Sequence record: NC_019405.1
Length of the DNA: 64,000 bases
Direction: 5' to 3' (one strand)
This document shows, piece after piece, positions 27,428-52,982 of the stretch (positions are counted from its first letter, which is position 1; the number at the start of each line of letters is the position of its first letter). A program made the position numbers and the translations under genes. Below the pieces are notes generated by a model. The model did no database searches. It was not told the origin of the DNA and worked only from the letters and a program-made list of their open reading frames with translations.

Positions 27428-27436
27428 GGGGTTCTC

Positions 27437-28844: not shown

Positions 28845-29924
28845 TTAGAAGCGACCCCGGCCGCGCGAGGCGCGTTCGGTGCGCTCCTCGCCTTCGTCCT
28901 CGTCGTCGCGACCCCGGCCGCGCGTCGGACGCTCGTCACGCTCGTCCTCCTCGTCGCGGCTGCGACGGGCGGGGCGCTCGTCACGCTCCTCGCGGTCGTC
29001 GTCGCGGCTGCGGCGAGCCGGGCGCTCGTCTTCCTCGTCGCGCGAGCGACGGGCCGGACGTTCGTCCTCATCGTCACGGCTGCGGCGGGCGGGACGCTCT
29101 TCCGGTTCGTCGTCGCGCGCGGCGCGGCGGCTCGAACGCTCTTCGCGCTCCTCCGGCTCGTCATCGCGGCTGCGGCGGCTCGAACGCTCTTCGCGGTCGT
29201 CGTCACGCGAACGACGGGCCGGACGCTCGTCCTCGTCGTCGCGGCTGCGGCGCGAGCGCTTGTCCTCGACGGCCTTGGGCTTGTCGTCGTAGTCGTCCGG
29301 CGTGCCTTCCAGCAGCGCGGCCAGTTCCGTCTCCGGCATCCAGCGCACGATCTTGAACTTCGGCGCGTACTTGGTGACCTTCCGGCCGCCCTTGGTCTTG
29401 CCCTCGAAGGGGTTGGAGTCCAGGGCGATGATCGGCACCTCGCCGGGATGGTTGCGGAAGCTGTTGCCGAAGTCCTTCAGGAACGCGGCCAGCGCCCGGC
29501 GCTTGGAGACGTTGTTGGCCTGGAAGACCATCTCGACGTAGGGCTCGTCGATCAGACGGAAATCGATCGTGTACTGCTCGACCGGGCCGTCTTCCTCGCC
29601 GTAGGGACCGTGGTCCGGCAGGCTGTTCTTCGACGGCTGCGGGCCGTCTTGCAGGGCGACCATTTCTTCGTAGACGACCTTGCCGTCCACCCAGATCACC
29701 CAGCCGCGCTTGTAGGAGCGCAGGTTGGCGGCCATTTCGGTGCCGTTCTTCAGCGGCTCGTCCTCGGCGCCGTAGGAGTACGTGCCGTCGTTGCCGTCGA
29801 ACTTCATGAAGGCCTTGCCGTCGCCGCCGCCCTTGAGGTTGTTGGCCTCGTTGGCGATCGCGGCGTAGAAATCGTCCTGGCTGGCCAGATAGCCGCCGGC
29901 CGAACGCGTGGTGAGTTCACCCAT
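28845..29924 (-). CDS. Putative single-stranded DNA-binding protein with a long R/D/E repeat tail
   Basis: N-terminal ~200-aa domain (FMKFDGNDG...GWVIW...Y.P.FKIVRW) of the kind found next to phage PolA genes; C-terminal ERPARRSRDDED repeats. Function inferred from context. Confidence 0.6.
   Translation of the reverse strand: MGELTTRSAGGYLASQDDFYAAIANEANNLKGGGDGKAFMKFDGNDGTYSYGAEDEPLKNGTEMAANLRSYKRGWVIWVDGKVVYEEMVALQDGPQPSKNSLPDHGPYGEEDGPVEQYTIDFRLIDEPYVEMVFQANNVSKRRALAAFLKDFGNSFRNHPGEVPIIALDSNPFEGKTKGGRKVTKYAPKFKIVRWMPETELAALLEGTPDDYDDKPKAVEDKRSRRSRDDEDERPARRSRDDDREERSSRRSRDDEPEEREERSSRRAARDDEPEERPARRSRDDEDERPARRSRDEEDERPARRSRDDDREERDERPARRSRDEEDERDERPTRGRGRDDEDEGEERTERASRGRGRF
28860..29260 (-). 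repeat. Tandem coding repeats (E-R-P/S-A/S-R-R-S-R-D-D/E-E)
   Basis: About ten imperfect ~33-39 nt units within the SSB-like CDS. Confidence 0.85.
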
Positions 29925-36845: not shown

Positions 36846-38549
36846 TTACAGGCGCCAGTGGCGGCCGTTGAAGGTGATCAGCGCCCGCTTGCCATTCGGG
36901 TACTGCACGCAGTGGGTATGCGCCCAGGACGAGGGGCCGGTGTTGTAGCCCATGTCCAGCTTCGAGGTCGTGCCGGTGTTGTAGGCGCTCTCGAAAATGC
37001 CGGGCGAGTGGGTGTGACCGAACGTCACCTTCGGGCCGATCTTGGCGAACTGCTGGATGTTGCCGCGCGAGCCGTTGGCGCCGTTGTGGCCGTGGTTGGA
37101 GTGCTCGACCCCACCGACGACGCAGGTCTCGTCCTCGCGCAGGAACTTCACGCCGTTGCAGTTCCAGACGTCGAAGGCGTTGGTCATCACCTCCTCGAAG
37201 ATCGAGAAGTTCTTCTCGCCGGTCCGGATCGAGGCGTAGACCGCCCGCTGGCAGGAGAGGAAGAACTCGGCGTTGACCGGGTCGGCGCGGTAGTCGGCCG
37301 TCTTCAGCCACTTGTTGAGCGCCAGATCGTGGTTGCTCTCGACCACCGTGACCTTCGAGTCCGGCGCCTGCCGGCCCAGGATGGTCAGGAACATCGCCAC
37401 CTCGCGCAGTTCCTGCTCGACGCTTTCAGAGCCCTTGACATAGAGCCGGAAGCGGTCGTGCGGATCGGCGATGTTGTGGTGGTTGCGCGCCCGGAAGTCG
37501 GACACGTCATGGACGAAGATGTGCTCGGGCCGCAGGACGTCGATCATCGACGGCGTCGCCACGCTGCCCCACACTCGGCTCCCGTCGGCCGAGCGTTGCT
37601 CGGTCGGGAAGAAGCCGAAGGTGGCGGCCGAGACCTCCGGGTCGATCTGGGCGACGTGGATGTCCCCCGGCGTCAGGCAGGACACGCGATGGCCCTCGGT
37701 CACCACGCCGTCCTTGACGAACACGTCCAGATCATAGAACGACCCGTCGGTGTCGCCCAGCAGGTGGCGGCAGAAGAACTTGCCGTCCTCGTCGACCTCG
37801 ACCAGCACCGCGCCCAGTTGGTGGTGGAAGCTGGCCTTGATCCCGGCCTTCTTCGGCACGTAGTTGGGCTTGGTGACCGCGCCCGTCGTCATGATCTGCT
37901 TGGACGGGGTGTGCTTCATCGTCGGGACGCTGACGAGTTGCACCTTGGCGTGCGGGAAGATGCCCCAGCGCTCACGGGTGTAGGAGTGGAAGCCCGACAG
38001 CGGGTTCTCGGCCGTGGGGAGGGTGTTCATCTCGCCGCAGAAGTCGATCCGGTCGGCGATCCGGACGCGCTCGGCGACGAGATATTCCATCACCCGCTTG
38101 TGGAAGAACGCCGCGTGCTTGGCGTGATCCTCGAACAGGCGCTTGGAGTAGGTGAAGCCGGCGATCATGATCTCGCACGGCGCGTCCTGGCGCAGGTGCT
38201 CGGCATAGGCTTCCAGGTTGTCGACGAACCCCTCGTGGATGTGCGTCGAGTCCTGGGCCGAGGACAGGATGAACCGCCGGCGCCCGGTGGTCTCGTCCAC
38301 CGTCACAGTCCGCGCGGCCGGGGCCGGGCGGTGCGACAGCGGGTCCTTGCGCATCGAGTAGAGCCGGTTTTGCAGGGTCGTGCGCTTGACGCTGTACTTG
38401 CGCGAGAACGCCCGTTGACCGCCGGCCTTCTTGACCATCGCGTTCAGTTCTTCCGGGGTCACCGAGTAGATGTCGAAGGGACCCTCGGCCGGCAAGGCGT
38501 CCTTGGGCTTCTTGCCCGCCTTGGAAGCGTGTTCGAACTCAGCCGGCAT
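36846..38549 (-). CDS. Calcineurin-like metallophosphoesterase with an N-terminal HTH-like segment
   Basis: PGDIH, VHDVSDF, ESNHD, NHGH and GHTHS metal-binding motifs. Confidence 0.75.
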   Translation of the reverse strand: MPAEFEHASKAGKKPKDALPAEGPFDIYSVTPEELNAMVKKAGGQRAFSRKYSVKRTTLQNRLYSMRKDPLSHRPAPAARTVTVDETTGRRRFILSSAQDSTHIHEGFVDNLEAYAEHLRQDAPCEIMIAGFTYSKRLFEDHAKHAAFFHKRVMEYLVAERVRIADRIDFCGEMNTLPTAENPLSGFHSYTRERWGIFPHAKVQLVSVPTMKHTPSKQIMTTGAVTKPNYVPKKAGIKASFHHQLGAVLVEVDEDGKFFCRHLLGDTDGSFYDLDVFVKDGVVTEGHRVSCLTPGDIHVAQIDPEVSAATFGFFPTEQRSADGSRVWGSVATPSMIDVLRPEHIFVHDVSDFRARNHHNIADPHDRFRLYVKGSESVEQELREVAMFLTILGRQAPDSKVTVVESNHDLALNKWLKTADYRADPVNAEFFLSCQRAVYASIRTGEKNFSIFEEVMTNAFDVWNCNGVKFLREDETCVVGGVEHSNHGHNGANGSRGNIQQFAKIGPKVTFGHTHSPGIFESAYNTGTTSKLDMGYNTGPSSWAHTHCVQYPNGKRALITFNGRHWRL

Positions 38550-39222
38550 AGAGAAGCTCCGGTTTGGCGCTGACCGGCTTGGACCAATCCCAGACGTACC
38601 AAGCATAGGCGAAGCGCGGGGCGCCCTTGGTGCCGGCGATCCAGCGAGGGCGGTGGCGAAGGGTGACCTTCGCGGTGAAGGCGGGGTGATCGAACAGGTC
38701 CTTGCGCGAGCGCGCGGCGTCCCATTCGTGGCGGCAGAGGAAGGCGACGAGGCCCTGATCGGCCTCCATCAGCGACAGCGCGTGGCGCGCGGCGCGCTCG
38801 GCGTCCTTGCCGTAGGGCGGGTTGGTGATGATGGCGTCGGGACGCGGTGGCAGCGGCGTGGGCTTGCGCTCCTCGCCCTTCTCATCGACGATCGTTTCGG
38901 GCCGGGCCTTCAGCGCGCCCAGGCGGTCGAGGTCCGCCGGCGTCAGTTTGAAGAAGTCCTCCACCGCGTCCACCTCGAAACCCTCGTAGCGGTGGATGTC
39001 CGTGGAGAGGACCTCCTGCACGAAGGGCTTGAGCGGCGTGGCGATCGCGCCGTTGCCCGCGAAGGGCTCCCAGGCGAAGAACGGGGCGAAGTCGTCGCCC
39101 AGGGCCTCGATCAGGGCGTCGAAGGCCGGCCGAGGAGTCGGGTAAAAGTCCAGCGGGGTCCTGGCATATCCGGAGGCGCCCAGCATGGAGGGGTCTTTGC
39201 GACCAGCATCGGAGAGAGACAT
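38539..39222 (-). CDS. Amino (N6-adenine/N4-cytosine) DNA methyltransferase-like protein
   Basis: DFYPTP, WEPFAGNGAI (motif I) and ITNPPYG (motif IV). The start could be 39222 or 39240. Confidence 0.82.
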   Translation of the reverse strand: MSLSDAGRKDPSMLGASGYARTPLDFYPTPRPAFDALIEALGDDFAPFFAWEPFAGNGAIATPLKPFVQEVLSTDIHRYEGFEVDAVEDFFKLTPADLDRLGALKARPETIVDEKGEERKPTPLPPRPDAIITNPPYGKDAERAARHALSLMEADQGLVAFLCRHEWDAARSRKDLFDHPAFTAKVTLRHRPRWIAGTKGAPRFAYAWYVWDWSKPVSAKPELLYAG

Positions 39223-39254
39223 GGTCGTGAGGGATGTCATGGTTAACGAAGGGT

Positions 39255-39299
39255 GTCAAGATTCACGACATTGACTGTCGTGAGCCACCACGCTAGACA
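39255..39299. promoter_or_regulatory. Divergent promoters sharing the repeated motif
   Basis: Motif on the - strand at 39255-39269; + strand TTGACT (39271-39276), 17 bp spacer, TAGACA (39294-39299). Confidence 0.68.
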
Positions 39300-39300
39300 G

Positions 39301-39585
39301 GGGGCTACGGGCCGTCCTCCTGCGTTAGCCCCGCCGCCGCGCCTTCCAGGCGGCGAAGGTCGGGACGGAGCCGAAGGCGAGCCGGCCGAGGCAGCGGTTG
39401 GTGAGCAAAAGGAGAACCCGGCGAGCGGCGGAAGGCGTCGTTGACGCCCTCGGACTCGTCAAGCACGTGGTGATGCCGGAAATCACCGCGATCGCGCGGA
39501 CGTCTGGACGTTGCTAGGCGTAAGGCAGGCCTGCCGAGAAGTGGAAATGGCCGGGGCGGGCGGGACTTGACCTCGTCCGCCTTTC
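39301..39585 (+). ncRNA. Candidate ~285-nt structured ncRNA A
   Basis: Follows the promoter above; ends in the hairpin GGCGGGCG/CGTCCGCC plus TTT; no credible ORF. Confidence 0.4.
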
Positions 39586-39595
39586 CGCCTAAGCT
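39567..39595 (+). promoter_or_regulatory. Promoter TTGACC, 17 bp spacer, TAAGCT
   Basis: Canonical spacing; the -35 box lies in the loop of the upstream terminator-like hairpin. Confidence 0.6.
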
Positions 39596-39601
39596 TCCCT
39601 C

Positions 39602-39963
39602 ATTGCAGGCGCAGCACCGCCCTTCGCTAACGGCCCCGAGGGGTACGCAAGGGCTAGAAGCCTTGCCTGGGACAGGACTGCCTCTGATCCAGGAACGCCC
39701 TGGGCCGCGTAGCGCCCATGACGCGAACGCCGGCCGAGAATGGGCGACTAGGCGTGACGGCGGCCAGAGGCCGCAGCGACATTCCAAGCTCGATAGAGCG
39801 ATCGGCGGGCCGGGGCGAAAGCCCTGTTTCGAGAGCCAGGGCAACCCGTCATAGGTCCTGGTCGGGCGACGAGGCAGCAAGTCCCGCGAACGGAGCCTCT
39901 GAGGTGGCGTCACCAAGATGCAGCAGACGCAAAAAGGCCCCGATCGCGAGATCGGGGCCTTTT
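39602..39963 (+). ncRNA. Candidate ~350-nt structured ncRNA B
   Basis: Bounded by a promoter and a strong terminator; GGGC-GAAA-GCCC (39813-39824) and other short hairpins; no credible ORF. Confidence 0.45.
39931..39963. terminator. Bidirectional intrinsic terminator
   Basis: AAAAAGGCCCCGATC-GCGA-GATCGGGGCCTTTT. Confidence 0.85.
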
Positions 39964-39968
39964 CATGT

Positions 39969-40057
39969 TGGAGCTTCGGGAGGGACTCGAACCCTCATAG
40001 GTGTTCCCACCAGCAGAGATTTGCAATCCCGCGCCTAACCTCTCAGTCCACCGAAGC
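39969..40057 (-). tRNA. tRNA-Cys(GCA) with a long (type II) variable arm
   Basis: Acceptor GCTTCGG/CCGAAGC, U73, encoded CCA; anticodon loop TT-GCA-AA; T-arm GAGGG-TTCGAGT-CCCTC; variable hairpin GGTG-GGAA-CACC. Confidence 0.88.
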
Positions 40058-40059
40058 AC

Positions 40060-40235
40060 AAAAGGACCTCGACGCCCGAAGGCCCGAGGTCCGATCCGTA
40101 ACCAGGGGAGGGCCGTAGCTGTCCCCTGACCCTGAACGACAGGTGGCGGGCTTGGTCGTCATCCCGTCAGGCTCGCGGCGCCGCTCGCCTGACCCGCCGA
40201 TATGCCACGAGGGCAGTGATCCGCAGGTCCCCATA
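40060..40235 (-). ncRNA. Candidate ~175-nt structured RNA upstream of tRNA-Cys
   Basis: Internal TCAGGC...GCCTGA hairpin (40167-40192) and a terminal UUCG-capped hairpin (40064-40092) with a U4 tract just before the tRNA. Confidence 0.3.
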
Positions 40236-40241
40236 AATAGC

Positions 40242-40276
40242 AAAAAGGCCGCGATCCGCGAGGACCGTGGCCTTTT
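40242..40276. terminator. Bidirectional intrinsic terminator
   Basis: AAAAAGGCCGCGATCC-GCGA-GGACCGTGGCCTTTT. Confidence 0.8.
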
Positions 40277-41155
40277 CGTTTTCCGACGGGCTGAGACTAC
40301 ACCCATCAGCAATCCCGCTTCGAGGATTATTCCCCAGGTGCGACCCCAGGTATTCCCTCGACGTCCACCAGACCCCTTGCGGTAGTCCAGTCCGAGATCA
40401 TCGCCGCCGTTCTTGCGCACCCCGAAGGGATTGCGGGTCTGGCGTTTGACCCATCATGGCGAACTACTCGACAGTTCCTTCCCCGCTGGGCTTGCGACCC
40501 ACTCACCGGCGCTAACCGGCTGACGAAGCTCTTCCTATCGACACCTCGCGGGCTTGCGACCCTTGAGATGACTCCGTTACCCGAGGGCCGGAGCATTTGG
40601 CGACTTACGTCCGCCACTGGACCAGTCTTTGCGTTTTTCATCGAAGCGGGGATTGAACCCGCGACCGACAGCTAGGACGGCTGTTGCACTACCACTGTGC
40701 TATTCGCAAACCCACCAAGACGTGCTGGTCCAGTTGTTCCCAGAGCTTTTGACCCCAGAAATGCAACACGCCTCATATCTTTCGCCTTGCGGGCTACTCG
40801 ACTGCTCTTCAGGACCCCGTCTCCCCCGACCTTTCGGCCAGGATGCCCAGCACCCCTCGAACTGAAGCAAAGCTCTTCACCGCGAAGTGTCGAACCCTGC
40901 AACCCAAACGGTTATCCGTACTCCCTAGACGCGCTTGCACGGGATAGTCCGCTTGCGACGGACTGGCGGTTAAAGCCTCGGAGTTACCCCGGCCCCGCCT
41001 TGTCTCCCACGGTCTTCAGGTCTATCCCCTTTTGCAAGAGGCGGCCAGCTTCCCAGCCCGGACCCGTCGGCTTCCTCTGTCCTCTTGCGAGGTCGGGCGG
41101 CCTATGGGAGACCGTCCCTGTCACCCCGTCGCCGGGGCTTTCGTCAGAAGCGACG
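40277..41155 (-). ncRNA. Large (~880 nt) structured ncRNA, GOLLD-like candidate, with an embedded tRNA-like domain
   Basis: Own promoter (41161-41189) and terminator (40242-40276); no credible ORF; many - strand GNRA hairpins (GCAA at 40488-40500, 40550-40562, 40947-40963, 41081-41092; GAAA at 40830-40837). The family assignment is an inference. Confidence 0.62.
40638..40709 (-). pseudogene. Degenerate tRNA-like element (nominal anticodon TCC) inside the large ncRNA
   Basis: D-arm GCAC-AGTGGTA-GTGC, anticodon stem ACAGC/GCTGT with loop CGTCCTA (G33, not U33), T-arm GCGGG-TTCAATC-CCCGC; broken acceptor stem and no CCA. Confidence 0.7.
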
Positions 41156-41160
41156 ATGAC

Positions 41161-41189
41161 GTTCTAGCGACAGCCCACGTCGTCGTCAA
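41161..41189 (-). promoter_or_regulatory. Promoter of the large ncRNA (TTGACG, 17 bp spacer, TAGAAC)
   Basis: Canonical spacing on the - strand, divergent from the tmRNA promoter. Confidence 0.68.
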
Positions 41190-41245
41190 CGACTTTTTAC
41201 ATCCCGACGCGGAATTTTTTCGACAGTCGTGGATGACGACAGTGC

Positions 41246-41274
41246 TTGACATTCTCGTAGACCCATGCTAGGTG
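41246..41274 (+). promoter_or_regulatory. tmRNA promoter (TTGACA ... GCTAGGT)
   Basis: TTGACA at 41246-41251 with a GCTAG -10-like element 16-17 bp downstream. Confidence 0.6.
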
Positions 41275-41275
41275 T

Positions 41276-41658
41276 CGGAAATCGTTGTAATTCGGACAAC
41301 GGAACTGGCGGCAAGACAGGGGTGCGAATCCCCTCGCCTCCACCATCGACGCCCGGCGCTGGGAGTACGCGACTCCTGGGCAGGGAGTGTTACCCTGGCG
41401 GGCTGCGGCCCGAGCCAAAGGTAGCCGGGCGTCGTTGATGGGGGCGACTAGCTTTCGATTGGCGCTCGGGACTGAAAGACGCAACGGTGGGTGACCTCCA
41501 CATCGGCTTGCCGGTGATCGGGTCAGGCAACAGTAAATGTCGCCGCCAATGACAACGACGTCGTGGCTTTCGCCTCGGCTCGTGAAGCCATCGCCGCCTA
41601 ATAAGCGGTAGAGGAGCCCGCCGGGAGCTTGGCAACAGAATCCCGGCAACCCCCTTTC
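41276..41658 (+). ncRNA. ssrA: Circularly permuted (two-piece, alphaproteobacterial-type) tmRNA
   Basis: Acceptor piece with T-arm AGGGG-TGCGAAT-CCCCT and CGCCTCC-A-CCA (ends 41345); intervening stem TCGACGCCCGGC/GCCGGGCGTCG; coding piece begins GGGGGCG (41440) giving a G3.U70 Ala acceptor stem; tag frame AANDNDVVAFASAREAIAA then TAA TAA (41542-41604); downstream GGCAACAGAA motif. Confidence 0.92.
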
Positions 41659-41782
41659 GCAGGCGGGAACACCAACAGGCGATCTGTCGGGCGACCGATT
41701 TCCGATCCGTGTTCCCGTCTTCGAAAGGTGGTCAGGCCTACCCTCTTGGTGTGCTATCCAAGGGTCTGGCCACTTTACAGAA

Positions 41783-41861
41783 CGCGGGGTAGAGGAGTCC
41801 GGTTGTCCTCGTCTGGCTCATAACCAGGAGATCGTGGGTTCAAATCCCACTCCCGCTCCCA
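41783..41861 (+). tRNA. tRNA-Met(CAT), initiator-like
   Basis: CGCGGGG/TCCCGCT acceptor with a C1-U72 mismatch, loop CT-CAT-AA, T-loop TTCAAAT, encoded CCA; only two of the three anticodon-stem G-C pairs of canonical fMet. Confidence 0.88.
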
Positions 41862-41868
41862 ATGCGAA

Positions 41869-42000
41869 CGCCGGCTGTTGAGAACGACGGCGTGACAAGC
41901 TCGGAGAGAACGAGCACTCCAGTCCGGGGTATGAGGCCGGACTAGCGGACGCCGTAGCGATTGCAGGCGTGACACCCGGAGATAGCGGGACCGGCTTTCC
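41869..42000 (+). ncRNA. Candidate multi-hairpin small RNA
   Basis: GCCGG/CCGGC-TTT closing stem, ACGGCGT/ACGCCGT, GCTCG/CGAGC, AGTCCGG/CCGGACT and CCCG/CGGG hairpins. Confidence 0.3.
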
Positions 42001-42087
42001 GAGCCGCATGCTCGGCGCGTAAGACCGCAGGCCTCGGCCATCGGGCAGTGTCAGGGGATGAGGCTAGTCCTCGGCTAACCACCTAGC

Positions 42088-42227
42088 GGTGGAGCTAGGG
42101 CATGCGGTTCGGAAAGCCGGGTTCGCGGTTCGTCCGCTACGAGATGGAGATGTCGCCGGTTCGAGTCCGGCAGGTCCCCCAAAAGGAGGCCTTAGCTCAG
42201 TCGGTAGAGCGCTCCTATCCCACCTTT
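42088..42227 (+). ncRNA. Circularly permuted tRNA mimic, YrlA Y-RNA-like candidate
   Basis: The T-arm GCCGG-TTCGAGT-CCGGC comes BEFORE the D-arm GCTC-AGTCGGTA-GAGC; the acceptor-like stem AGGTCCC/GG(A)GGCCT is closed by a CCAAAA loop; there is no anticodon loop; the ends can pair (GGTGG/CCACC) and finish in TTT. Confidence 0.62.
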
Positions 42228-42312
42228 GGTACGGTGGCTCGACAGGTAAGGCATCGGCCTCATAAGCCGAGGGTTCGTCCCAATCCTGGTTCAAATCCAG
42301 GTCGTACCTCCA
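42228..42312 (+). tRNA. tRNA with CAT anticodon, long (type II) variable arm and U73 (Met or Ile2 uncertain)
   Basis: GGTACGG/TCGTACC acceptor, TCGGC-CTCATAA-GCCGA, variable hairpin GGG-TTCGT-CCC, T-arm CCTGG-TTCAAAT-CCAGG, encoded CCA. Confidence 0.85.
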
Positions 42313-42386
42313 AATAGACGCTTGACCCCCGGCCGCAGGCTGCTAAGCTTCCCCGGTCGGGATCGTCCCGCGTCCTTTCCAAGGTC

Positions 42387-42417
42387 AAGCCCCCGGAGCC
42401 TCGCTTCGGGGGCTTTT
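42387..42417. terminator. Intrinsic terminator at the end of the RNA island
   Basis: AAGCCCCCGGAG...TTCGGGGGCTTTT. Confidence 0.75.
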
Positions 42418-42770
42418 CAGTTCTTGACCACCCGCAGGCGCCGGGCCTCGTTGGCGCGTTCCTCCGCCGCCACGCGCGAGACGTCTTGCAGATGCGCCTT
42501 GGCGATCAGATCGGGCGCGCCCACGGCCCGGAAGGGTACCTTGACGGAAAGGTCGACATAGCGCCGCAAGAGCGGCTCGAACTCCAGACCGCGCGCCTGG
42601 GCGATCCGCGACAATGCGCCGGCGACGATCGCCACGACCAGGACGTTGGTCGGTGTCTCCTTGGTCAGGGTCCAGATGCCCGGTATAGACTGCCCAGGAT
42701 GAAGTTCCTGCCGCGCCACGTCATCGGCGGCGGCGCGGAAGAGGTTCTCGTAAGGGACGTTTTCGAGCAT
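42417..42770 (-). CDS. Hypothetical protein (~117 aa)
   Basis: Start MLENVPYE chosen within the longer ORF-track frame; helical sequence. Confidence 0.55.
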   Translation of the reverse strand: MLENVPYENLFRAAADDVARQELHPGQSIPGIWTLTKETPTNVLVVAIVAGALSRIAQARGLEFEPLLRRYVDLSVKVPFRAVGAPDLIAKAHLQDVSRVAAEERANEARRLRVVKN

Positions 42771-42849
42771 ACGACAACGATAGCGATCTTTTGCCGCCTG
42801 TCTACCCTCTACTCTTGATAGTAGTAAAGCCCCGATTTCAACATAAGAG

Positions 42850-43236
42850 CTAAAGCCGTCCGCCGTAATAGTCCCGCCACATTCCCTCCCAATAGTCGAT
42901 GTGCTTCTCGGTGCAGTCCGGGCAATACCGACGGTCCCGGTTGGGGTCCTCGCCCTTGCCATCCCAGTGGTAGCAGGTCATTGAGCCGACCATCCCCAGG
43001 CGCCAGAACGTCCCGCAGTGTTCGCATCCCCCAAGGGCGATGTTCTGCATCGTCCGGTGGTGGTTCCACTTGCAGAGCCAGTTGAACCAGAGTTCATAAT
43101 AGAGGGCGTCGCGGATGCTGCTGTACTGGGTGAGGCGGACCTGAACGACCTTGCGCCGGCCGTTAGGCTTCAGGTCGCGGTCATAGGTCGGCCTGTAGAA
43201 GACTTTGATCTTCGGAAACCAGCGGCGTTTCTTCAC
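42850..43236 (-). CDS. Hypothetical Cys-rich (Zn-binding) protein
   Basis: GTG start overlapping the helicase stop (GTGA); CEHC and CPDC motifs. Confidence 0.6.
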   Translation of the reverse strand: MKKRRWFPKIKVFYRPTYDRDLKPNGRRKVVQVRLTQYSSIRDALYYELWFNWLCKWNHHRTMQNIALGGCEHCGTFWRLGMVGSMTCYHWDGKGEDPNRDRRYCPDCTEKHIDYWEGMWRDYYGGRL

Positions 43237-45179
43237 GTGTCCATGACCTTTGCGATGTTGTCTTCCTTCTCCTTGGCGGCCTGGGCGATGCGCGCGTCGA
43301 GCGAGCCGTTGGCCACCAGGAAGAAGCACATGATTTTCTCGGCCGTCTGTCCGATCCGGCAGGCGCGGTCCTCGGCCTGCTCGATCAGGGTCGGCGTCCA
43401 GTCCCCCTCGGCGAACGCCACGTCGTGCGCCCGCGTCATGGTGAAGCCTACACCGGCGGCCTGGAGGTTACAAACGATGACCCGGCAGGACTCGTCGTCC
43501 TGGAACTTGTCGACCTGTAGCTGGCGCTTGTTGACGGGGGTCCCGCCATAGATCATCGCCGGATTGTAATCCGCCAGCGCCTCGGCCAGCGCCTTGACGA
43601 CGTCGGAGTGGTAGGCGAACAGGATCAGCTTGTCGCCGCCGTCGAGGAAGTTCTTGACCCAGGGGATGATCGCCGGGAGCTTGGCCATCCCCAGTTCGCG
43701 GCGGACGGCGGCGATCTCCTCGAACAGCACCGCCACGGCCGGCGGCGCGAGCCCCAGCACGGCGGCGGCGTAGTCGAGATTGAGCGCCCGCGAGTTGGGC
43801 TTGTCAGGATCACCGTCCTGTCCCACCGCCTTGTCGAAGCCGTAGCGCTGGGCCGTCTCCAGGATCGACAGACCCAGGCGGATGTCGCGCTGGTCCTCGG
43901 TCTCGTTCTCGCCGGCCAGCACCGTGGCCTCGTAGAGCTTCAGCGCCTGGGAAAGCTCGTCCTCGCGCGCCACGACCTCGCGGATTTCCGGGCTGTCGAG
44001 GAGGACGATCTGGCGGAACTTCGGCGGAAGCTCGGGCAGCACCTCGCGCTTGTTCCGCCGCACCATGAAGGTCGAGCGCAGCCGATAGCCCAGTTCCTCC
44101 AGGTTGGAGGCCCCGGTGAAATTATAGGCGCCGTGCTTGCCGCGCGTGTTGTCGAACCAGCCCTCGCAGTAGCGGTAGCCGAAGTCGTTGTAGCTCTTCC
44201 CCAGGCCATCGGGATCGAAGGCCTTGACGATCGACCACATCTCGATCGGGCGGTTCATCATCGGCGTGCCCGACAGGAACACGCGGCGCTTGGCGTCGAC
44301 CGGGTTGAACCAAATGTCGGCCAGCACCGGCTCGCGGTTCTCGGCCTCGGCCTTCTTGATCTCGGCGGCGTTGGCTTCCTTACGCTTCTTGCGCACCGCC
44401 GCCTTCGAGCGCGCATCCATCTGCTCGCCGCCGAGGATGAAGATCGTGCGCCCGCTGTCGGGGGTCTTGATCGCGTGACATTCGTCGCAGACCAGGAGGT
44501 CCCACGGCTGCTCGTGGATTTCCTTGGAGAAGCGCTCCAGGATGTCATAGTTGATGATCACGACATCGGTCTTAGGCCACCAGCGCGGGTGGACGACCTT
44601 CTTGAAACGCGGCTTGCCGTTCTTGTAGAAGCCGTCGCGCACGGTCTCGCGATAGCGCGTCTCGGCGATCCCGACGCTCAGGCCCTTGCTGCACCAGAGC
44701 AGCCATTCGCGCCGCCAGTTCTCCTTCAGCGAGGCGGGGACCACCACCAGCACGCGGCGGATTTTCTTGATCGCGTTGGAGACGCCGATCGCCTGGATCG
44801 TCTTGCCCAGCCCCGGCGGATCGGCGATCAGGGTGTCGCGCCGCCCCGGCAGGGTGGCGAAGTCGATCCCGGCGCGTTGGAAGGGCTTGAAGTCCCAGCC
44901 TTTGGCCTCGACCGCCTTGGAGATCGGCGGCCAGAAATCGCAGTCGGCCTTGTAGGAGAGCGCCCGGCTGATGTTGGCCAGATGCTCGCGGCGTCCCAGT
45001 TCGTCGAGCGCGTTGGTCTTCCAGACCACGCCGGGCACCGCTAGGGCGACAGCCGGGTTGTGGGTGATCAGCGCCCGGCGGGGCGGGCTCCAGGTGAAGC
45101 CGGCCTCCTGGAACCGCTTGCGGTCTTCCCATTCGGTGACGGCCCAGAAGTAGCCGTCGCGATAGTCGATAAAAGCCAT
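43233..45179 (-). CDS. SNF2-like (HARP/SMARCAL1-type) helicase
   Basis: DPPGLGKT, VVPASL, DECH, SGTPMMN, GVGFTMT and QAEDRACRIGQ motifs. Confidence 0.92.
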   Translation of the reverse strand: MAFIDYRDGYFWAVTEWEDRKRFQEAGFTWSPPRRALITHNPAVALAVPGVVWKTNALDELGRREHLANISRALSYKADCDFWPPISKAVEAKGWDFKPFQRAGIDFATLPGRRDTLIADPPGLGKTIQAIGVSNAIKKIRRVLVVVPASLKENWRREWLLWCSKGLSVGIAETRYRETVRDGFYKNGKPRFKKVVHPRWWPKTDVVIINYDILERFSKEIHEQPWDLLVCDECHAIKTPDSGRTIFILGGEQMDARSKAAVRKKRKEANAAEIKKAEAENREPVLADIWFNPVDAKRRVFLSGTPMMNRPIEMWSIVKAFDPDGLGKSYNDFGYRYCEGWFDNTRGKHGAYNFTGASNLEELGYRLRSTFMVRRNKREVLPELPPKFRQIVLLDSPEIREVVAREDELSQALKLYEATVLAGENETEDQRDIRLGLSILETAQRYGFDKAVGQDGDPDKPNSRALNLDYAAAVLGLAPPAVAVLFEEIAAVRRELGMAKLPAIIPWVKNFLDGGDKLILFAYHSDVVKALAEALADYNPAMIYGGTPVNKRQLQVDKFQDDESCRVIVCNLQAAGVGFTMTRAHDVAFAEGDWTPTLIEQAEDRACRIGQTAEKIMCFFLVANGSLDARIAQAAKEKEDNIAKVMDT

Positions 45180-47405: not shown

Positions 47406-49034
47406 TTAGGCGCTATGCGCCGCGACATAGGCCTTGGCGTAGGCCTCGCGGTAGGCGGCCTCGTGGACCACGCCCGCTTCGTCGGTGAGGTCCTCGAACG
47501 CCTCGTAGTGGACGCCATTGGAGGCGTCCAGGTCGAAAACGCCGTCGAGCCGGGCCTGCTGGGCGTCGGCGCGGCCGTCGATGTCGCCCACGAGCTTGGC
47601 CCAGGCCGCGTATTGCGCCTCGACCACCGCGTCGAAGGCGGCGATGTAGGCGTTGCTCATCGCCGCCTCGCTGTCGAGCGGCGATTCGGTGACGTCGTTG
47701 TAGCGCTCGCCCTCGAAGCCGTCGAGGATATCGACGATCGCGTCGGCCAACGCGTCCTCGTCGGTTTCGGCCATCGCCTCGGCGATCGCCTTATGGGCGT
47801 CCTGCTCGCCCCAGGTCCGAGCGATGCTCTCGCCCAGGACCGCGTCCTCGGTCGGGAAGCCGTTCTCGTCGAGCACCGGATCGGTGCTTTCGGCCGTTTC
47901 TTCGTCCTCGGCTTCGGGGCCGGGGTCGGTTTGCTCGGCGTCAGCCTTGCCGGCGGCGAAGGCCTCGCCATAGCCGCGCACATAGCCCTCCGAGTAGGCT
48001 TGCCGGGCCGAATCGGGGCCGTCGCTGAGTTCGCCCGGCATGTCGAAAGACGCGTCATACTCCCAGCCGTTCTCGGCGTCGGCGGCCCCGGCCTTGCGAC
48101 CAGCTTCTTCGCCGGCCTTATCCCAGTTGGTCTCGACGTCGTCGAACGACACCGACACCTCGGCGGTGGTCGCGGCTTCCGGCGCCGAGGCCGTCACGGT
48201 CACGCCGTCGGCGGCGGTGGCGTCGGTGGCGTCTTCCGGGTCCTCGACCGGCGCGGCGGCCTTCTCGTCGGCGAAGCGGCGCTCGACGGCGGCCGAGAAG
48301 TAGTTCTTGGCGTCGGCCTCGGGGATTTCAGCCAGCACTTCCATCTTGCAGCAGCGCAGCTTGGCTTGGTTGTAGTCGGTCGGGATCGCCGTCACGTCGC
48401 TCGGATTGATCTCGACGATGATGATCTTGCCAACGCCGTTGTGGAACTGGAGCAGGTAGTCGAACGAGCAGGCGTGCAGGCCACGCGAGCAGAGTGCATT
48501 GCGGTTGGGGTCGCACTTGTCGCGGTCCATCTCGACCGTCGAGCCGATCTTGTATTCGACCGTGCCCGAGTGGTGGTCGAAGAAGTCGGCGCGCACGCGC
48601 TTGAAGGCGTGGAAGTTGCCGTCCGGGGTCAGGGGCAGGCGACCCTTCTCCAGGAAGGCGTAGAGGTCCGCCGCGATCGACTTGTCGGGGTTGAGGTGAA
48701 CCTTCTCGATGAACTTGGTCAGCGGCTCGATGTCGAAGCCTTCCGACAGCACGCGCTTGAAAGTGCCGGCCGCCACGTAGTCGATCACGTGGCCGTCCAG
48801 GCGCAGCCGGTCGCGGTCGTCGAGGATGACGCGCCCGAACGACTGGGCCGCGACATAGGCGGCGACGTCGGCGATCAGGCGGATTTCGTCGATGTCCTGC
48901 GGCACCTTGCGCAGGGCTTCCTCCAGCTTCTTGGCCTGGGCCGAGGCGCGGGGGAACACGCGGTAGCGACCATCGAGCGTGATCGAGATCACGTCGTTGG
49001 TGATCGTCGACGCGATCTTCTTGGGGGTGGTCAT
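47406..49034 (-). CDS. rIIB: rIIB-like protein with an acidic C-terminal extension
   Basis: DLYAFLE...LTPDGNFHAFKRV, CSRGLHAC and KLRCCKMEV motifs; follows rIIA. Confidence 0.85.
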   Translation of the reverse strand: MTTPKKIASTITNDVISITLDGRYRVFPRASAQAKKLEEALRKVPQDIDEIRLIADVAAYVAAQSFGRVILDDRDRLRLDGHVIDYVAAGTFKRVLSEGFDIEPLTKFIEKVHLNPDKSIAADLYAFLEKGRLPLTPDGNFHAFKRVRADFFDHHSGTVEYKIGSTVEMDRDKCDPNRNALCSRGLHACSFDYLLQFHNGVGKIIIVEINPSDVTAIPTDYNQAKLRCCKMEVLAEIPEADAKNYFSAAVERRFADEKAAAPVEDPEDATDATAADGVTVTASAPEAATTAEVSVSFDDVETNWDKAGEEAGRKAGAADAENGWEYDASFDMPGELSDGPDSARQAYSEGYVRGYGEAFAAGKADAEQTDPGPEAEDEETAESTDPVLDENGFPTEDAVLGESIARTWGEQDAHKAIAEAMAETDEDALADAIVDILDGFEGERYNDVTESPLDSEAAMSNAYIAAFDAVVEAQYAAWAKLVGDIDGRADAQQARLDGVFDLDASNGVHYEAFEDLTDEAGVVHEAAYREAYAKAYVAAHSA

Positions 49035-49055
49035 GGTCGTCTCCTTGAGACCGGC

Positions 49056-51179
49056 TTAGCTGAACGCCAGGGTGAGCGGGATGGCCTTGATCAGGCCGGG
49101 CAGGGCCTTGATGCAGGCGGTGATCTGCGCCTCGGTCGAGGCGTGGTTCATCATGTCCAGGTACTTCCGGACCGGATGGTTGTAGTGCTTGTAAACCTTC
49201 TGGTGGCCCTCTTCGATGATCTGGATCGTCTTGCTCTTGGGCGGGGCCTTGTAGGAGCCGTTCTCCTCATAGAGCGACTTGAGGTAGGAGCGCTCGCGCT
49301 CGGTCCACTCGGCGATGTTCGCCGCCAGGAACGGCTTGAGCGCCACGAAGAAGGCCGCCAGCGGCGAGGAGGTCATGCGGCCCAGGGCGTCGTATTCCGC
49401 CGGGCAGTGCTTGACCGCGCGGGTGAAGAACCCGAAGGCCGTCGACGAGGAGGAGAACTTCCCCAGCAGATTGACGCACTCGTCGAGCGTGATCTTGTGC
49501 TTGGCTTGCAGGGCCGCGTCCACGGCCGCGCGCAGCGACGGGATGTTGGCCTCCTCGACGTGCTTCTGGGCGGTCGGCGAGGCGATGTAGATGTGCTTGA
49601 TCCCGAACTTGTTGGCCACCACGAAGGTGTCCTCGGGCTTCTTGCGGTACTGGTCCGACGTCACCCAGGCCACGCCGCCGTCGAGATCGGTCTCGACCTC
49701 GACCACCGCCCGCTGCTCGCCCGCCCGCTTGGCCAGGGCCAGACCCCGGATCGGCGGGGTGTAGACCGCCTGCGGCTTCTTGCCCTCGACCCGGCGCGGC
49801 ACCACGCCGCGCAGGTCATCGATGTCGACCTCAACGAACTTGGCCTTCGGCAGGGCGCATTGCCAGAACTTGGCGGGCTTGTCGAACGCCAGCAGGAAGT
49901 CGCCGGACTTCACCTTCAGCTTCTCCTCCAGGTAGAGGCGGAAGAGCCGGGCCAGACGGCGGGTCTCGCTCTGGCTGAACTCGCTCTGCGTCGAGGCGTC
50001 GCGCGAGGGGTCCATCAGGTCGGAGACGTCGCGGATCACGTAGAAGGTTCGCTCGGCGTCATTGTCGAGCGACAGGGTCTTCTCGATGCGGTAGCCCCAG
50101 CGCTCGCGGTACTGGTCGAACGTGGCCTTGTAGATGCACGACACGCCCGAGAAGGAGATGCTGGAGGTGGTCAGGCCCGTCGCCGGATGGGTCACCGACT
50201 TATTGAGGAACTGAGGCTTGAGCTTGTTGTAGGTCTTGAAGAACTCGACCACCGGCTCGATGTCCTTGACCTTGTCCCAGATCACCATCTCGACCTCGGT
50301 GGTGATCTCGCCGATCTTCTTGATCAGGGCCTCGACCGCGTCGGGCTTGTACTGAATCTCTTCCCGCGACGGGATCGGCTCCACCGTGCCGATCGGCACC
50401 GTGATCAGCCATTTGCGGCCCATGTCGTGCGGCAGCGTCAGCCCACCCTTGTTGGCCAGCGGATAGATCACGCAGCCCTGGCGCACGTTCCAGGTCGAGG
50501 GCAGCGACGAATTCTCATAGGCCGCCCAGGTGCCGTCGGTGGCCTCGAACTGCGGGGTCCCCAGGCCCTGTCCCAGGTCAATGTTGGTGTCGAACATCGG
50601 CGAGTAGCCGAGCGCGACGTTGCGGATCGCCTTCTCGAAGGCGGGGAAGTCCTTGGCCGCCACGCCGACCGTGACGCGCACCCCGACCGGCTCGGCGCAC
50701 TCCTCGGTGCCCTGGAGCATGATCCGGGGCCGCCCGCCCTCGCCGATCGCGGCGGTATAATGACGCACCACGTCGCCGTCATAGCAGGACACCGAGAACT
50801 GGCTGGTGTAGGCGAACGGGCTCTTGGAGCCCAGGCCGAAGGCGCCGACCAGATCGTCGGTCTGGTCCTTGTCCGACTCGAACAGCGTCGAGTAGAGAAA
50901 CATCACCTTCTCGTGGTTCATGCCAACGCCGTAGTCGCGGACGTAGAATTCCGGACGCAGTTCGTTCGGAGCGTGGACGAAGAAGGTGCCCTTGTAGCCC
51001 GAAACCAGTTGGGAGTCGTAGGCGTTGGTGGTGACTTCGCGCACCATCGAGCCGATCTTGTCCGAATAGAGGCCGTCGATCAGCATCCGGAAGGCCTTGC
51101 CGGAGGCCTTGATCGTGAACTCCTGCTCCTCCTCGACCCCGATGGTTTCAAGGATGACGGGCTCGGCTCCAAGACGCAT
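49056..51179 (-). CDS. rIIA: rIIA-like protein (N-terminal GHKL/HATPase domain)
   Basis: LYSDKIGSMVREVTTNAYD, VRDYGVGM, STLFESDK and GAFGLGSKSPFAY motifs. Confidence 0.87.
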   Translation of the reverse strand: MRLGAEPVILETIGVEEEQEFTIKASGKAFRMLIDGLYSDKIGSMVREVTTNAYDSQLVSGYKGTFFVHAPNELRPEFYVRDYGVGMNHEKVMFLYSTLFESDKDQTDDLVGAFGLGSKSPFAYTSQFSVSCYDGDVVRHYTAAIGEGGRPRIMLQGTEECAEPVGVRVTVGVAAKDFPAFEKAIRNVALGYSPMFDTNIDLGQGLGTPQFEATDGTWAAYENSSLPSTWNVRQGCVIYPLANKGGLTLPHDMGRKWLITVPIGTVEPIPSREEIQYKPDAVEALIKKIGEITTEVEMVIWDKVKDIEPVVEFFKTYNKLKPQFLNKSVTHPATGLTTSSISFSGVSCIYKATFDQYRERWGYRIEKTLSLDNDAERTFYVIRDVSDLMDPSRDASTQSEFSQSETRRLARLFRLYLEEKLKVKSGDFLLAFDKPAKFWQCALPKAKFVEVDIDDLRGVVPRRVEGKKPQAVYTPPIRGLALAKRAGEQRAVVEVETDLDGGVAWVTSDQYRKKPEDTFVVANKFGIKHIYIASPTAQKHVEEANIPSLRAAVDAALQAKHKITLDECVNLLGKFSSSSTAFGFFTRAVKHCPAEYDALGRMTSSPLAAFFVALKPFLAANIAEWTERERSYLKSLYEENGSYKAPPKSKTIQIIEEGHQKVYKHYNHPVRKYLDMMNHASTEAQITACIKALPGLIKAIPLTLAFS

Positions 51180-51272
51180 GGCAAACTCCGAAAGGCAGGC
51201 TTGAGTGAATGTGTTGCCGATCCTTCTAGCGAGGCGTTCTGGCTCTGTCAACACACTCCAGCCTGCCGGGAT

Positions 51273-51311
51273 GTCGTGAATCTTGACGTTCCGCGACGCC
51301 TGAGGCATGCT
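51273..51311 (+). promoter_or_regulatory. Promoter with the repeated motif (GTCGTGAATC-TTGACG, 17 bp spacer, CATGCT)
   Basis: Exact motif in the divergent region between rIIA and the + strand genes. Confidence 0.7.
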
Positions 51312-51558
51312 CGTATTCATGCGGAACATCACGGCTGAAGCGACGGGCAAGACCCGCACTTGCACGTCCGAGGATTATCCCTGGCCCCCGCGCGGGTCCG
51401 AGGGATGCGATTGCATGGAAAAGTCCAGCAACCCCAAGCGTGACTTCATGCTGATCGCCGACCGCACCGGTGTAATCGTATGGTACGCGAGGATGACATG
51501 CCCGATTCACGGCCCGAAGATCAAGACGTCGGACGTCGCAACCGAATCCACGACCTGA
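51307..51558 (+). CDS. Small hypothetical Cys-containing protein
   Basis: 83-aa ORF; the true start is probably the downstream ATG at 51320. Confidence 0.45.
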   Translation: MLVFMRNITAEATGKTRTCTSEDYPWPPRGSEGCDCMEKSSNPKRDFMLIADRTGVIVWYARMTCPIHGPKIKTSDVATESTT

Positions 51559-51905
51559 TCGTCGGCGACCCTCGGGAGGACGCCCGCTACGCCCGCAAGC
51601 TCAGTAACCGCGACAAGACGATGTTCGTCTGCGGGGTCCTCAACCATCCCGCCTCGGCCTTTGATCTCGATCTCCCGTTCCCGATCGAGGACTGGATCGC
51701 CTCGGACGACAACTCCCTGGTCTGCGCCGGGCTCTACCTGACCGATCTGCGCCTCCAGTTCTACGAGGCCCTGGCGCCGGCCCAGGACGACGAGCAGGCC
51801 TTCGTCCGCCAGGGCGAGGCCGAGTTCTGGTATCACCGCTTCAACGTCATGATCGAGCGGCGCGCCCACGGCGTGCTGGTCACCGACGGGCGCGTCCTCC
51901 ATTGA
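51498..51905 (+). CDS. Hypothetical protein (~135 aa)
   Basis: GAGGA RBS, phage codon usage. Confidence 0.6.
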   Translation: MPDSRPEDQDVGRRNRIHDLIVGDPREDARYARKLSNRDKTMFVCGVLNHPASAFDLDLPFPIEDWIASDDNSLVCAGLYLTDLRLQFYEALAPAQDDEQAFVRQGEAEFWYHRFNVMIERRAHGVLVTDGRVLH

Positions 51906-52276
51906 GCAGCGATCTGCCTCTCTACGATGGCGCGCTGACGGGCAAGCTTGTCGGCCGCTTCGTGCGCGCCGGGCAGGCGTTCGACGTCGTGCGTCCCGGC
52001 TTCGACGCCCAGGGGATCAAGCGCCAGACCTGGACCCAGATCGTGCATGGCGGCGTTCCCGTCTTCGAGGTCAAGGTCCGCACCGATCTCGACAACGTGA
52101 TCGACCGCTTCGACGAACTGTGGGAGCGTCATATCGGCGAGGACGAGGACCTGCTCGCCCGCGCCTTGGCCTCGGTCAAGAAGGAGCGGACCGCCAAGTT
52201 CCGGGATGGCAAGTCGGGGGTCACGCCGGCCCCGACCGTCCATGACGTCCGCATCCCCACCGCCTATAGCGGTTGA
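51902..52276 (+). CDS. Hypothetical protein (124 aa)
   Basis: TTG start overlapping the upstream TGA. Confidence 0.6.
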   Translation: MSSDLPLYDGALTGKLVGRFVRAGQAFDVVRPGFDAQGIKRQTWTQIVHGGVPVFEVKVRTDLDNVIDRFDELWERHIGEDEDLLARALASVKKERTAKFRDGKSGVTPAPTVHDVRIPTAYSG

Positions 52277-52355
52277 CATTTTGTTGGCGTTCGAGGGTTG
52301 ACAGCCCGGATTTCATGACTTAGATGCCTCCTCGACGACAACGAAGGAGGCTCTC

Positions 52356-52982
52356 ATGCCCAAGCGGATCAAAGGCAAGCGCATCGCCCTGCACCGGGCC
52401 AAGGTGCTCGACGCCGACGAGTTCAACAACCTGATCGAGGGCGTGTCCCGTCGCGAGCACGGTCTGCGTGACCGCGTGCTCTTCAAGCTCTCCTTCTATT
52501 GCGGCCTGCGCGTCGCCGAGATCGCCGGCCTGGAATGGCGCAAGCACCTGTTGGACGCCAGCGGTCGTCTGCGCCCCGCCATCCACGTCACCCACGACAT
52601 CGGCAAAAACTCGGTCGAGCGCTTCATCCCGATTGAAGCCTCACTGGCCGAGGACCTGCGCGCCCTGCGCAAGACCTGCCGCGACAACCGCTTCGTCATC
52701 TACCCCCTGCGCGTGACCATGCGGGGCGGCCCGGAGAAGACCGACGCCAACACCCTGGCGCAATACATGCGCCGGACGTTCCTGGAGTTCGGCCTGGACG
52801 GCGCTTCGTCGCACTCGGGCCGTCGCACCTTCATCACCGACCTCGCGCGGAAAGCGAACCTCGTGGGTTGCTCGCTCCGAGACATCCAGGGCATGGTGGG
52901 TCACAAGCGGATCGAGACCACCGGCAGCTATATCGAGACCAGCCGGCAGCAGGACCAACTCGTCGCCCTGGTCCTGCGATAG
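52356..52982 (+). CDS. Tyrosine recombinase, catalytic domain only (208 aa)
   Basis: GLRVAEI (Arg), SSHSGRRTF (HxxR), VGH and TGSY (Tyr); GAAGGAGG RBS. Confidence 0.9.

Follow-up and report, generated by a model that had tools for sequence, protein, structure and literature searches.

The transfer RNA (tRNA) cluster of phage T4 contains, besides its tRNAs, the stable non-tRNA RNAs named species 1 and 2, and this is one of several described systems with which an RNA-gene island of Caulobacter phage phiCbK is compared here. The island occupies positions 39270-42417 of a 64,000-nucleotide stretch of sequence record NC_019405.1 (“the window”, to which all coordinates refer unless the record or a fetched locus is named) and is 100% identical to record positions 101270-104417. 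Judging from its sequence, we would, on balance, read it as a modular RNA-gene hot spot, in which RNAs supporting translation would be expressed from promoters of the host type and a two-hairpin motif would act in cis, and not as one integrated system.

GOLLD RNAs are found in phages and prophages near tRNA islands and combine a conserved 3' region with a variable 5' region and a linker that sometimes holds tRNAs (Kretsch et al. 2025); a 14-mer cage was resolved by cryo-EM for another member of the family, and the discussion of the same paper speculates that linker tRNAs are held in such cages. The two-piece (circularly permuted) transfer-messenger RNA (tmRNA) of Alphaproteobacteria is a subject of Keiler, Shapiro and Williams 2000, and YrlA is the bacterial Y RNA of the rsr-yrlBA-rtcBA locus (Chen et al. 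2014, PMC4201824).

The named RNA families are known, and the phiCbK copy of GOLLD is already catalogued. The annotation of the record itself places four tRNAs and one hypothetical protein (gp290) in the island; a 2026 announcement of phiCbK-like phages counts tmRNA genes, and a tmRNA is already annotated in the relative Bajun. An earlier note on this stretch had supposed the combination of RNAs to be undescribed as one system, which stands insofar as the phiCbK genome paper reported tRNAs and found no other RNA, but not with regard to GOLLD beside phage tRNAs, which has been published with this very copy aligned. The candidates for novelty are a structured A RNA, a structured X RNA, the two-hairpin motif shared by these two, and a tRNA mimic without a Ro60 partner; the variation of the anticodon loop of the GOLLD pseudo-tRNA, at five adjacent bases among near-identical phages, also looks new. 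phiCbK is a standard laboratory phage of a model bacterium, and the island would provide a genetically tractable and culturable setting for GOLLD (whose cage structure is solved), for phage tmRNAs and for Ro60-less tRNA mimics; in its public records, part of the island is still covered by the annotation of a spurious protein gene, and the two structured RNAs and the small motif, which recur in many cultured and uncultivated phages, are left without any family assignment.

The island, its tmRNA and its tRNAs

According to RNA gene calls made with ARAGORN and Rfam 15 covariance models, the order of the locus is DNA methyltransferase gene, tRNA-Cys, (GOLLD), tmRNA, tRNA-Met, spacer RNA (X), tRNA-Met, helicase side, and a comparison of synteny, as proposed in the earlier note, finds this order kept across genera (Karma, Magneto, BL57, Rogue, BL10, RBC8, Brevundimonas phage Bajun and Colossus) with its parts varying. 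The island is 96-98% identical in Karma, Magneto, Swift, Ccr2/5/10/29 and RBC57, and is alignable only in part in BL57 and the Poindextervirus group (Rogue, BL10, RBC8 and others). The sole parts kept in all of the compared relatives are the tmRNA, tRNA-Cys, both tRNA-Met genes and part of X, while GOLLD and the YrlA-like module (i.e., the tRNA mimic) have been gained or lost independently of the other parts, and it is because of this independent presence and absence that the island is taken to be modular. As far as can be told from these sequences, its position is an RNA-gene hot spot throughout Dolichocephalovirinae, between the DNA methyltransferase gene and the helicase module; the immediate flanks are the DNA methyltransferase and a “DNA transfer protein” on one side, and two small open reading frames (ORFs) and a helicase on the other.

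The RNA anatomy put forward by the earlier note (tmRNA, a giant non-coding RNA recognizable as GOLLD, and atypical tRNAs) was matched in all of these parts by ARAGORN and/or Rfam. The tmRNA gene (41253-41692, +) was called by ARAGORN as circularly permuted, two-piece type (tmRNA*), and the full model RF04321 matches at 41283-41601 with 71.4 bits against a gathering score of 47. T arm, acceptor stem and 3' CCA of the tRNA-like domain are all present, the third pair of 41440-41446 with 41334-41340 in the RF04321 alignment is the G3-U70 wobble, and the permuted order is evident from the CCA end (~41343) being encoded before the 5' acceptor strand (41440). The tag frame (41539-41604) reads (V)AANDNDVVAFASAREAIAA and is followed by two stop codons; its C-terminus is ...REAIAA, and the tags of all compared relatives end in AA. 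This gene is kept in seven phages from at least four genera, including Rogue, BL10, BL57, Karma, Bajun and Colossus, across which the tag varies in its middle and is conserved at its end, like the promoter block and the tRNA-like domain. When likened by description to the two-piece tmRNA of the Alphaproteobacteria and the Caulobacter host, it shares the permuted order, G3-U70, the CCA and a tag ending in AA plus stops, but differs in being phage-encoded, in its presumed co-transcription with tRNAs, and in a tag that varies between genera.

Three tRNA genes accompany it. tRNA-Cys(GCA) (39969-40057, -; 89 nt; ARAGORN, Rfam tRNA 33.8 bits) is found in every relative compared; tRNA-Met(CAT) 1 (41783-41861, +; 79 nt; ARAGORN, Rfam alignment) has an enlarged D loop and a first base without Watson-Crick pairing to base 72, its annotation in BL10 being tRNA-fMet; and tRNA-Met(CAT) 2 (42228-42312, +; 85 nt; ARAGORN, Rfam) has a long variable arm. 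The CCA is encoded in all three. Since the anticodon of tRNA-Cys and tRNA-Met 2 is at position 34, the surplus bases of these two lie 3' of it, in the long variable arm; long tRNAs are, moreover, a general phiCbK trait, as the main cluster (record positions 47778-52586) has tRNAs of 84-91 nt. Both X RNA and the tRNA mimic directly abut tRNA borders.

A promoter pattern derived from the island's own sites (TTGAC-N17-19-TARR) was scanned for on both strands of the window and returned 10 matches, half of which (5/10) lie within the 3.1-kb island, in agreement with the at least four sigma70-like promoters claimed earlier. These five host-type, promoter-like sites are P-A1 (39271-39297, +; TTGACT-N17-TAGA), kept in Rogue, BL10, RBC8 and BL57 despite diverged flanks; P-A2 (39567-39593, +), the TTGACC block of which is kept in Rogue, BL10 and RBC8; the site assigned to GOLLD and, via read-through, tRNA-Cys (41163-41189, -), with equivalents in BL57 and Bajun; that of the tmRNA/tRNA-Met operon (41246-41272, +), whose TTGACA block is aligned in 7/7 relatives; and a site 3' of the last tRNA (42322-42347, +). 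The last of these is kept in close relatives, with a similar site in BL57, and, together with the operon terminator ~50 nt further on, it gives a predicted transcript of ~65 nt that would be convergent with the end of gp289.

Terminator-like hairpins are likewise numerous, 9 being observed in 38500-43500 versus 3.8 +/- 1.9 in shuffles, and the four convincing ones correspond in number to those of the earlier note. A bidirectional hairpin at 39931-39963, which would serve A RNA (+) and tRNA-Cys (-), matches the terminator part of a small RNA model and is kept in relatives with compensatory loop changes; a second (40064-40085, -) is directly upstream of tRNA-Cys and annotated as a terminator in Karma; a third, again bidirectional, is at the GOLLD 3' end (40249-40270); and the fourth (42399-42417, +) closes the operon and abuts the gp289 stop codon on the opposite strand. 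From 41692, where the tmRNA gene ends, to 42399, the hairpin scan returned none.

The scheme that we propose has three units, all of which would be transcribed early, by the host polymerase, from promoters of the host housekeeping type. The first (+) would yield the structured A RNA ending at its terminator, the second (-) the ~900-nt GOLLD with its linker tRNA-like element and, via read-through, tRNA-Cys, and the third (+) one long precursor comprising the permuted tmRNA, tRNA-Met 1, X RNA, the tRNA-like module and tRNA-Met 2. Host RNase P and tRNA 3'-end enzymes would be expected to cut this precursor at the tRNA borders, freeing the intervening pieces. The tmRNA, going by its family, would be charged with alanine and work with the host SmpB, freeing ribosomes stalled during infection and tagging their products for proteolysis, and the tRNAs may supplement initiator/Met and Cys decoding. 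The motif within A and X would act in cis, as a leader or spacer that serves processing or the binding of a protein, and would not be an RNA acting in trans; the parts would be independent modules that share a landing site and a mode of expression, not one machine.

What speaks for the scheme, besides the modularity, is the promoter enrichment in the island, the retention of the tmRNA and A promoters in diverged relatives, and the occurrence of the motif upstream of tRNAs and ORF starts in other phages. Four points weigh against it: the promoter calls are pattern matches; tRNA-Cys has two terminator-like hairpins ahead of it, so that read-through has to be assumed for its expression; a long helix in X is strongly conserved in its loops and in half of its stem, which exceeds the needs of a mere processing hairpin; and the GOLLD pseudo-tRNA has five bases exchanged in its anticodon loop and nowhere else, which hints at selection beyond a modular account.

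The A and X RNAs and their two-hairpin motif

A RNA (39597-39965, +) is a candidate structured RNA that sits between a promoter-like site and a terminator, in which it ends. Its folding z-score is -3.4 versus shuffles, and 19/93 of its predicted pairs stay paired through changes on both sides among six phages. The stretch upstream of it (39300-39565, +) folds no better than shuffles (z = -0.1), and therefore no structured RNA is claimed there.

X RNA (41862-42126, +), the second candidate, fills the 265 nt following tRNA-Met 1 in the space between the two tRNA-Met genes and is conserved in nine close and middle-distance relatives (alignments A1 and A2). RNAalifold predicts several hairpins, one of them with an invariant loop (42050-42075), and a 31-bp helix (41985-42016 with 42094-42126). 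Nine pairs of X are changed on both sides, a count reached by 0/500 column shuffles, and slid partners give 0-2; covariation in relatives is seen in both A and X. Colossus and PW also have the 5' half of X, and the distal half, invariant hairpin included, recurs in Bajun, within the intervening segment of the permuted tmRNA (fetched locus 2480-2595). Maturation of two-piece tmRNAs removes the intervening segment, and excision is therefore expected for the Bajun segment holding half of X. Scanning for the invariant X hairpin as an exact motif returned known phages only from viral contigs and no match from bacterial genomes; a lone metagenome match was discarded as a chance match within a coding region. 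Rfam 15 has no match at E <= 5 over 39000-42700, noise aside, for A RNA, X RNA or the motif that they share.

This motif spans ~50 nt and consists of hairpin 1 (ACGCC/GGCGU, flanked by GA and GUGAC) and hairpin 2, whose stem covaries freely and whose loop is of the GGAGAGA type. The covariance model built for it (R1) finds three copies in the whole phiCbK genome, all in the island, namely copy 1 inside A RNA (39723-39780, +; 46.4 bits), copy 2 starting 3 nt after tRNA-Met 1 (41864-41920, +; 49.6 bits), and copy 3 (41945-41995, +; 37.5 bits). A loose regular expression run on the same genome returned coding-region noise and was abandoned. Copy 1 is kept in Rogue, BL10, BL57 and Bajun, and as three tandem copies in Colossus; the BL10 version of copy 3 has a compensatory change in hairpin 1. 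Colossus has five copies altogether, three of which are in tandem units ahead of tRNA-Cys (fetched locus 1242-2043). Each of these units, ~230-250 nt long, ends in the motif, which in two of the three is then followed by a TTGAC-type promoter-like block, and the Colossus tRNA-Cys shares its strand, the plus strand of the fetched locus, with the tmRNA, whereas in phiCbK the two are on opposite strands.

The motif is not restricted to the relatives of phiCbK. A pattern fixed on hairpin 1 gave 119 matches in IMG/VR, 17 of them with the expected second hairpin, and 17 viral contigs bearing the motif have no non-tRNA Rfam family at gathering score; the covariation count of alignment A4 overstates independence, as hairpin 1 is invariant by search construction and the hairpin 2 stem was required by the filter. 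A better test is the scan with an independent pattern fixed on the 3' half, which found at least 123 copies in at least 116 contigs. Among the 123 copies listed, 80 have the complementary ACGCC at most 45 nt upstream, where ~4% would be expected by chance (many others being wobble variants), 10 precede a same-strand tRNA by 5-25 nt (tRNA-Met in four cases), and 69 are followed by an ORF (minimum 60 aa) that starts within 70 nt, GC-rich ORF calls being weak evidence. As the ORFs downstream of the motif in viral contigs appear unrelated by eye, a gene-specific riboswitch is unlikely. Known ribozymes and riboswitches, a T-box-like reading and a nut-like site were also considered and dropped, as no tool result supports any of them.

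Cultured phages of Ralstonia (GP4-like), Pseudomonas (Itty13), Rhodobacter (RcCWillis) and Planktothrix/Synechococcus carry the 3' half of the motif as well, unannotated and mostly in intergenic positions. In Ralstonia phage GP4 (fetched locus ~1480-1548), it precedes an HNH homing endonuclease gene by ~25 nt, with the small terminase gene close by; in Rhodobacter phage RcCWillis (fetched locus ~1480-1529), it adjoins a tyrosine integrase gene but lies on the opposite strand; and in Pseudomonas phage Itty13 (fetched locus 1456-2337), it is in an 880-nt gap without genes.

It is tempting to go further and regard A and X as members of an undescribed class of phage RNA element built on the two-hairpin motif, i.e., a new cis-acting signal (for processing, antitermination, or protein or ligand binding) that in phiCbK has been joined with a tmRNA, a GOLLD and a Ro60-less mimic in a locus made up of RNA genes alone and read by the host polymerase, though we would hesitate to give this even an equal chance of being right. 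It is part of this tentative reading that the motif would have spread over phages of Alpha-, Beta- and Gammaproteobacteria and Cyanobacteria, serving as a leader immediately ahead of tRNA or protein genes, and, if the motif is indeed such a general leader signal, it would amount to a new element of phage gene-expression control. Likened by description to species 1 and 2 of T4, A and X are similar in that they are structured non-tRNA RNAs within a phage tRNA operon that would be released by tRNA processing, and they differ in sharing a motif that is widespread in other phages.

That A and X are instead trans-acting regulatory or scaffold RNAs, with X, for example, binding tRNA-Met via its AUG-containing loops, we consider unlikely, even though several observations would suit it. 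Conserved hairpins of X (41926-41938 and 42052-42066) display UAUGAG and AUGAGGC, complements of the anticodon loop that both tRNA-Met have in common (near 41816-41822 and 42259-42265) and of stem bases next to it, and 4/10 of the tRNA-preceding motif copies among those in viral contigs adjoin tRNA-Met; covariation goes together with invariant loops, the conservation of the long X helix could point to a role in trans, and A RNA has a promoter-like site and a terminator of its own. The complementarity, however, amounts to 6-9 nt found post hoc, shows no covariation, has an extra mismatch in the Rogue variant and is possibly due to chance, the motif mostly stands ahead of unrelated ORFs, and part of X is in the discarded tmRNA segment of Bajun.

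GOLLD, the tRNA mimic and a possible counter-defence role

The conserved 3' region of GOLLD, as modelled by Rfam, is at 40288-40774 (-), where the full RF02032 model (positions 1-416) matches with 165.3 bits against a gathering score of 150, beside the tRNAs, as befits the giant non-coding RNA proposed earlier; this copy is listed, with exactly these coordinates, in the GOLLD alignment that accompanies Kretsch et al. 2025 as a supplement. The family is present in the Shapirovirus group and BL57 (171.2 bits in Karma, 169.7 in BL57), Bajun scores 104 bits, which is below the threshold, and the Rfam scan did not find it in Rogue, BL10 or Colossus. The promoter-like site (41189-41163, -) and the terminator (40270-40249) bracket ~900 nt, the last 487 of which are modelled by Rfam, and it is from this promoter-like site that the extent of the probable variable 5' region (40775-41150, -) is deduced, as the part between it and the Rfam match. 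This region (~375 nt) is near-identical in close relatives, ~95% identical in BL57 and loosely alignable in Bajun, the covariation alignment comprising three sequences only. By analogy with the solved member of the family, the phiCbK GOLLD probably forms the known RNA cage. It resembles the family in its full-length match above gathering, in adjoining phage tRNA genes and in having a tRNA-like element in the linker, and differs in being divergent from a tmRNA operon and in the properties of this element, namely its weak acceptor stem and the allelic switching of its anticodon loop. The spacer between GOLLD and tRNA-Cys (40086-40248, -) is nearly invariant in close relatives (2 substitutions), folds weakly (z = -1.6), and is alignable with Rogue and Bajun in its tRNA-Cys-proximal part (to ~40125).

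The linker element (40637-40710, -), called “Gly(tcc)” by ARAGORN, is a pseudo-tRNA with a poor acceptor stem and a non-canonical anticodon loop. The 7 nt of this loop (40666-40672) are CGTCCTA in phiCbK and Ccr10, CATCCTA in BL57, and CTCTTAA in Karma, Magneto and RBC57, with the rest of the pseudo-tRNA identical, i.e., all 5 differences between phiCbK and the Karma/Magneto/RBC57 allele are adjacent and within the loop, and the ARAGORN identity switches from Gly(tcc) to Lys(ctt). Such a swap in an almost invariant ~900-nt RNA could possibly reflect diversifying selection or a small conversion tract; as the loop alleles do not follow the grouping of the phages by the X region, recombination is suggested.

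The mimic is part of an accessory insertion with a YrlA-type tRNA-like module (42130-42227, +), in which RF02553 matches 42147-42214. A Y-RNA-like tRNA mimic had been claimed earlier, and the claim holds for the tRNA-like module of YrlA, as the match covers the T arm, the loop-closed acceptor-like stem and the canonical D arm with high posterior probabilities; it does not hold for the family as a whole, since the score of 29.7 bits (E = 5e-5 on a short stretch) is below the gathering score of 69, the match is to model positions 23-85 of 114, and the Ro60-binding basal stem (model positions 1-22 and 86-114) is unmatched, the gap between the module and tRNA-Met 2 being only 13 nt. The insertion, which is ~100 nt long and immediately precedes tRNA-Met 2, is present in phiCbK, Karma, RBC57 and Ccr10 and absent from BL57, Rogue, BL10 and RBC8; Magneto and Swift have a different insert at this position, and no Rfam match was found for that of Magneto. 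Scanning bacterial genomes for relatives of the mimic (a T arm closely followed by a D arm) returned tandem tRNA genes only and was uninformative.

As for the partner proteins whose genes the earlier note had suggested looking for, RtcB is there: gp240 (record positions 136644-137876; fetched stretch 26245-27477, -) matches Pfam RtcB at E = 3e-124 and is an RNA ligase of full length, albeit 33 kb from the island. TROVE/Ro60, SmpB and a CCA-adding enzyme, on the other hand, were found neither among the genome-wide product names nor in Pfam scans of 20 proteins; for the TROVE domain, the scans covered the neighbouring genes and 10 further large proteins, with three hypothetical proteins (350-647 aa) outside the scan. 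RtcB is encoded in 592 phage records, 30 of them from Caulobacter phages, including all of the phiCbK-like phages listed, and, because relatives lacking the mimic (e.g., Swift) carry it, RtcB does not track the mimic. Compared with YrlA, then, the phiCbK module agrees in its permuted tRNA-like layout, from T arm through loop-closed acceptor stem to D arm, and in having an RtcB gene in its genome, but it is below the threshold, has no Ro60-binding stem, has neither a Ro60 gene that could be found nor an adjacent rtcB, and is an accessory insertion directly upstream of a tRNA. Two further annotated products might bear on tRNA metabolism, namely gp299, a “nucleotidyltransferase” (28845-29924) without a Pfam match at E <= 0.01, and gp268, a “tRNA amidotransferase” (58987-59457).

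A rival reading unites these elements in an integrated, RNA-based counter-defence module, in which mimics and atypical tRNAs would decoy or replace the targets of anticodon nucleases, the tmRNA would clear stalled ribosomes, and GOLLD would shelter RNAs; we regard this as quite unlikely. The anticodon-loop switching and the presence of RtcB are possibly its best support, for the pseudo-tRNA varies only in its anticodon loop, which fits diversifying selection on a nuclease target, and the ligase is full-length; the YrlA-type module being a tRNA mimic, the unusual length of many phiCbK tRNAs (84-91 nt) and the published speculation about linker tRNAs in GOLLD cages may be added. Against this, RtcB is distant, common and present in relatives without the mimic, the Ro-binding part of YrlA is missing, as is, among the product names and scanned proteins, its Ro60/TROVE partner, and both GOLLD and the mimic are dispensable in sister genera. 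The one integrated decoy or anti-defence system envisaged by the earlier note is not supported by the distribution of its parts, as GOLLD is absent from Rogue, BL10 and Colossus and the YrlA-like module is in part of Shapirovirus only, and a set of independent modules remains the reading that we prefer.

The annotated gene gp290 and minor features

The weakest alternative, that the stretch encodes proteins (gp290 and other shadow ORFs) and that its non-tRNA RNA-like features are due to chance, can be dismissed as extremely improbable: GenBank does annotate the 190-aa ORF gp290 (39305-39877, -) as a hypothetical protein, along with ORFs at homologous positions in Karma, Magneto, Ccr10 and Rogue, but these ORFs vary in length and other annotations do not have them, gp290 itself fails as a gene in coding tests, and strong RNA family matches and covariation are on the strands concerned. 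Its GC content by codon position is 0.71/0.64/0.69, versus 0.83-0.94 at third and 0.42-0.48 at second positions in neighbouring genes; substitutions relative to phage Rogue are spread evenly over the codon positions (72/79/78); the indels between the two, with lengths of 1 (13 cases), 2 (four), 3 (two) and 16 (one), break the frame in 17/20 cases; and a Pfam scan gave no match. The absence of a credible protein gene, as asserted in the earlier note, is borne out for gp290.

Elsewhere in the window, ARAGORN reports a 96-nt “tRNA-???” with a four-base anticodon (7516-7611, -) inside the tail protein gene gp319 (record positions 68434-71910), which is probably a false positive, as Rfam gives no match there. 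The record also annotates inteins in the large ribonucleotide reductase subunit and the large terminase subunit (NC_019405.1 84028-86835 and 203470-206202).

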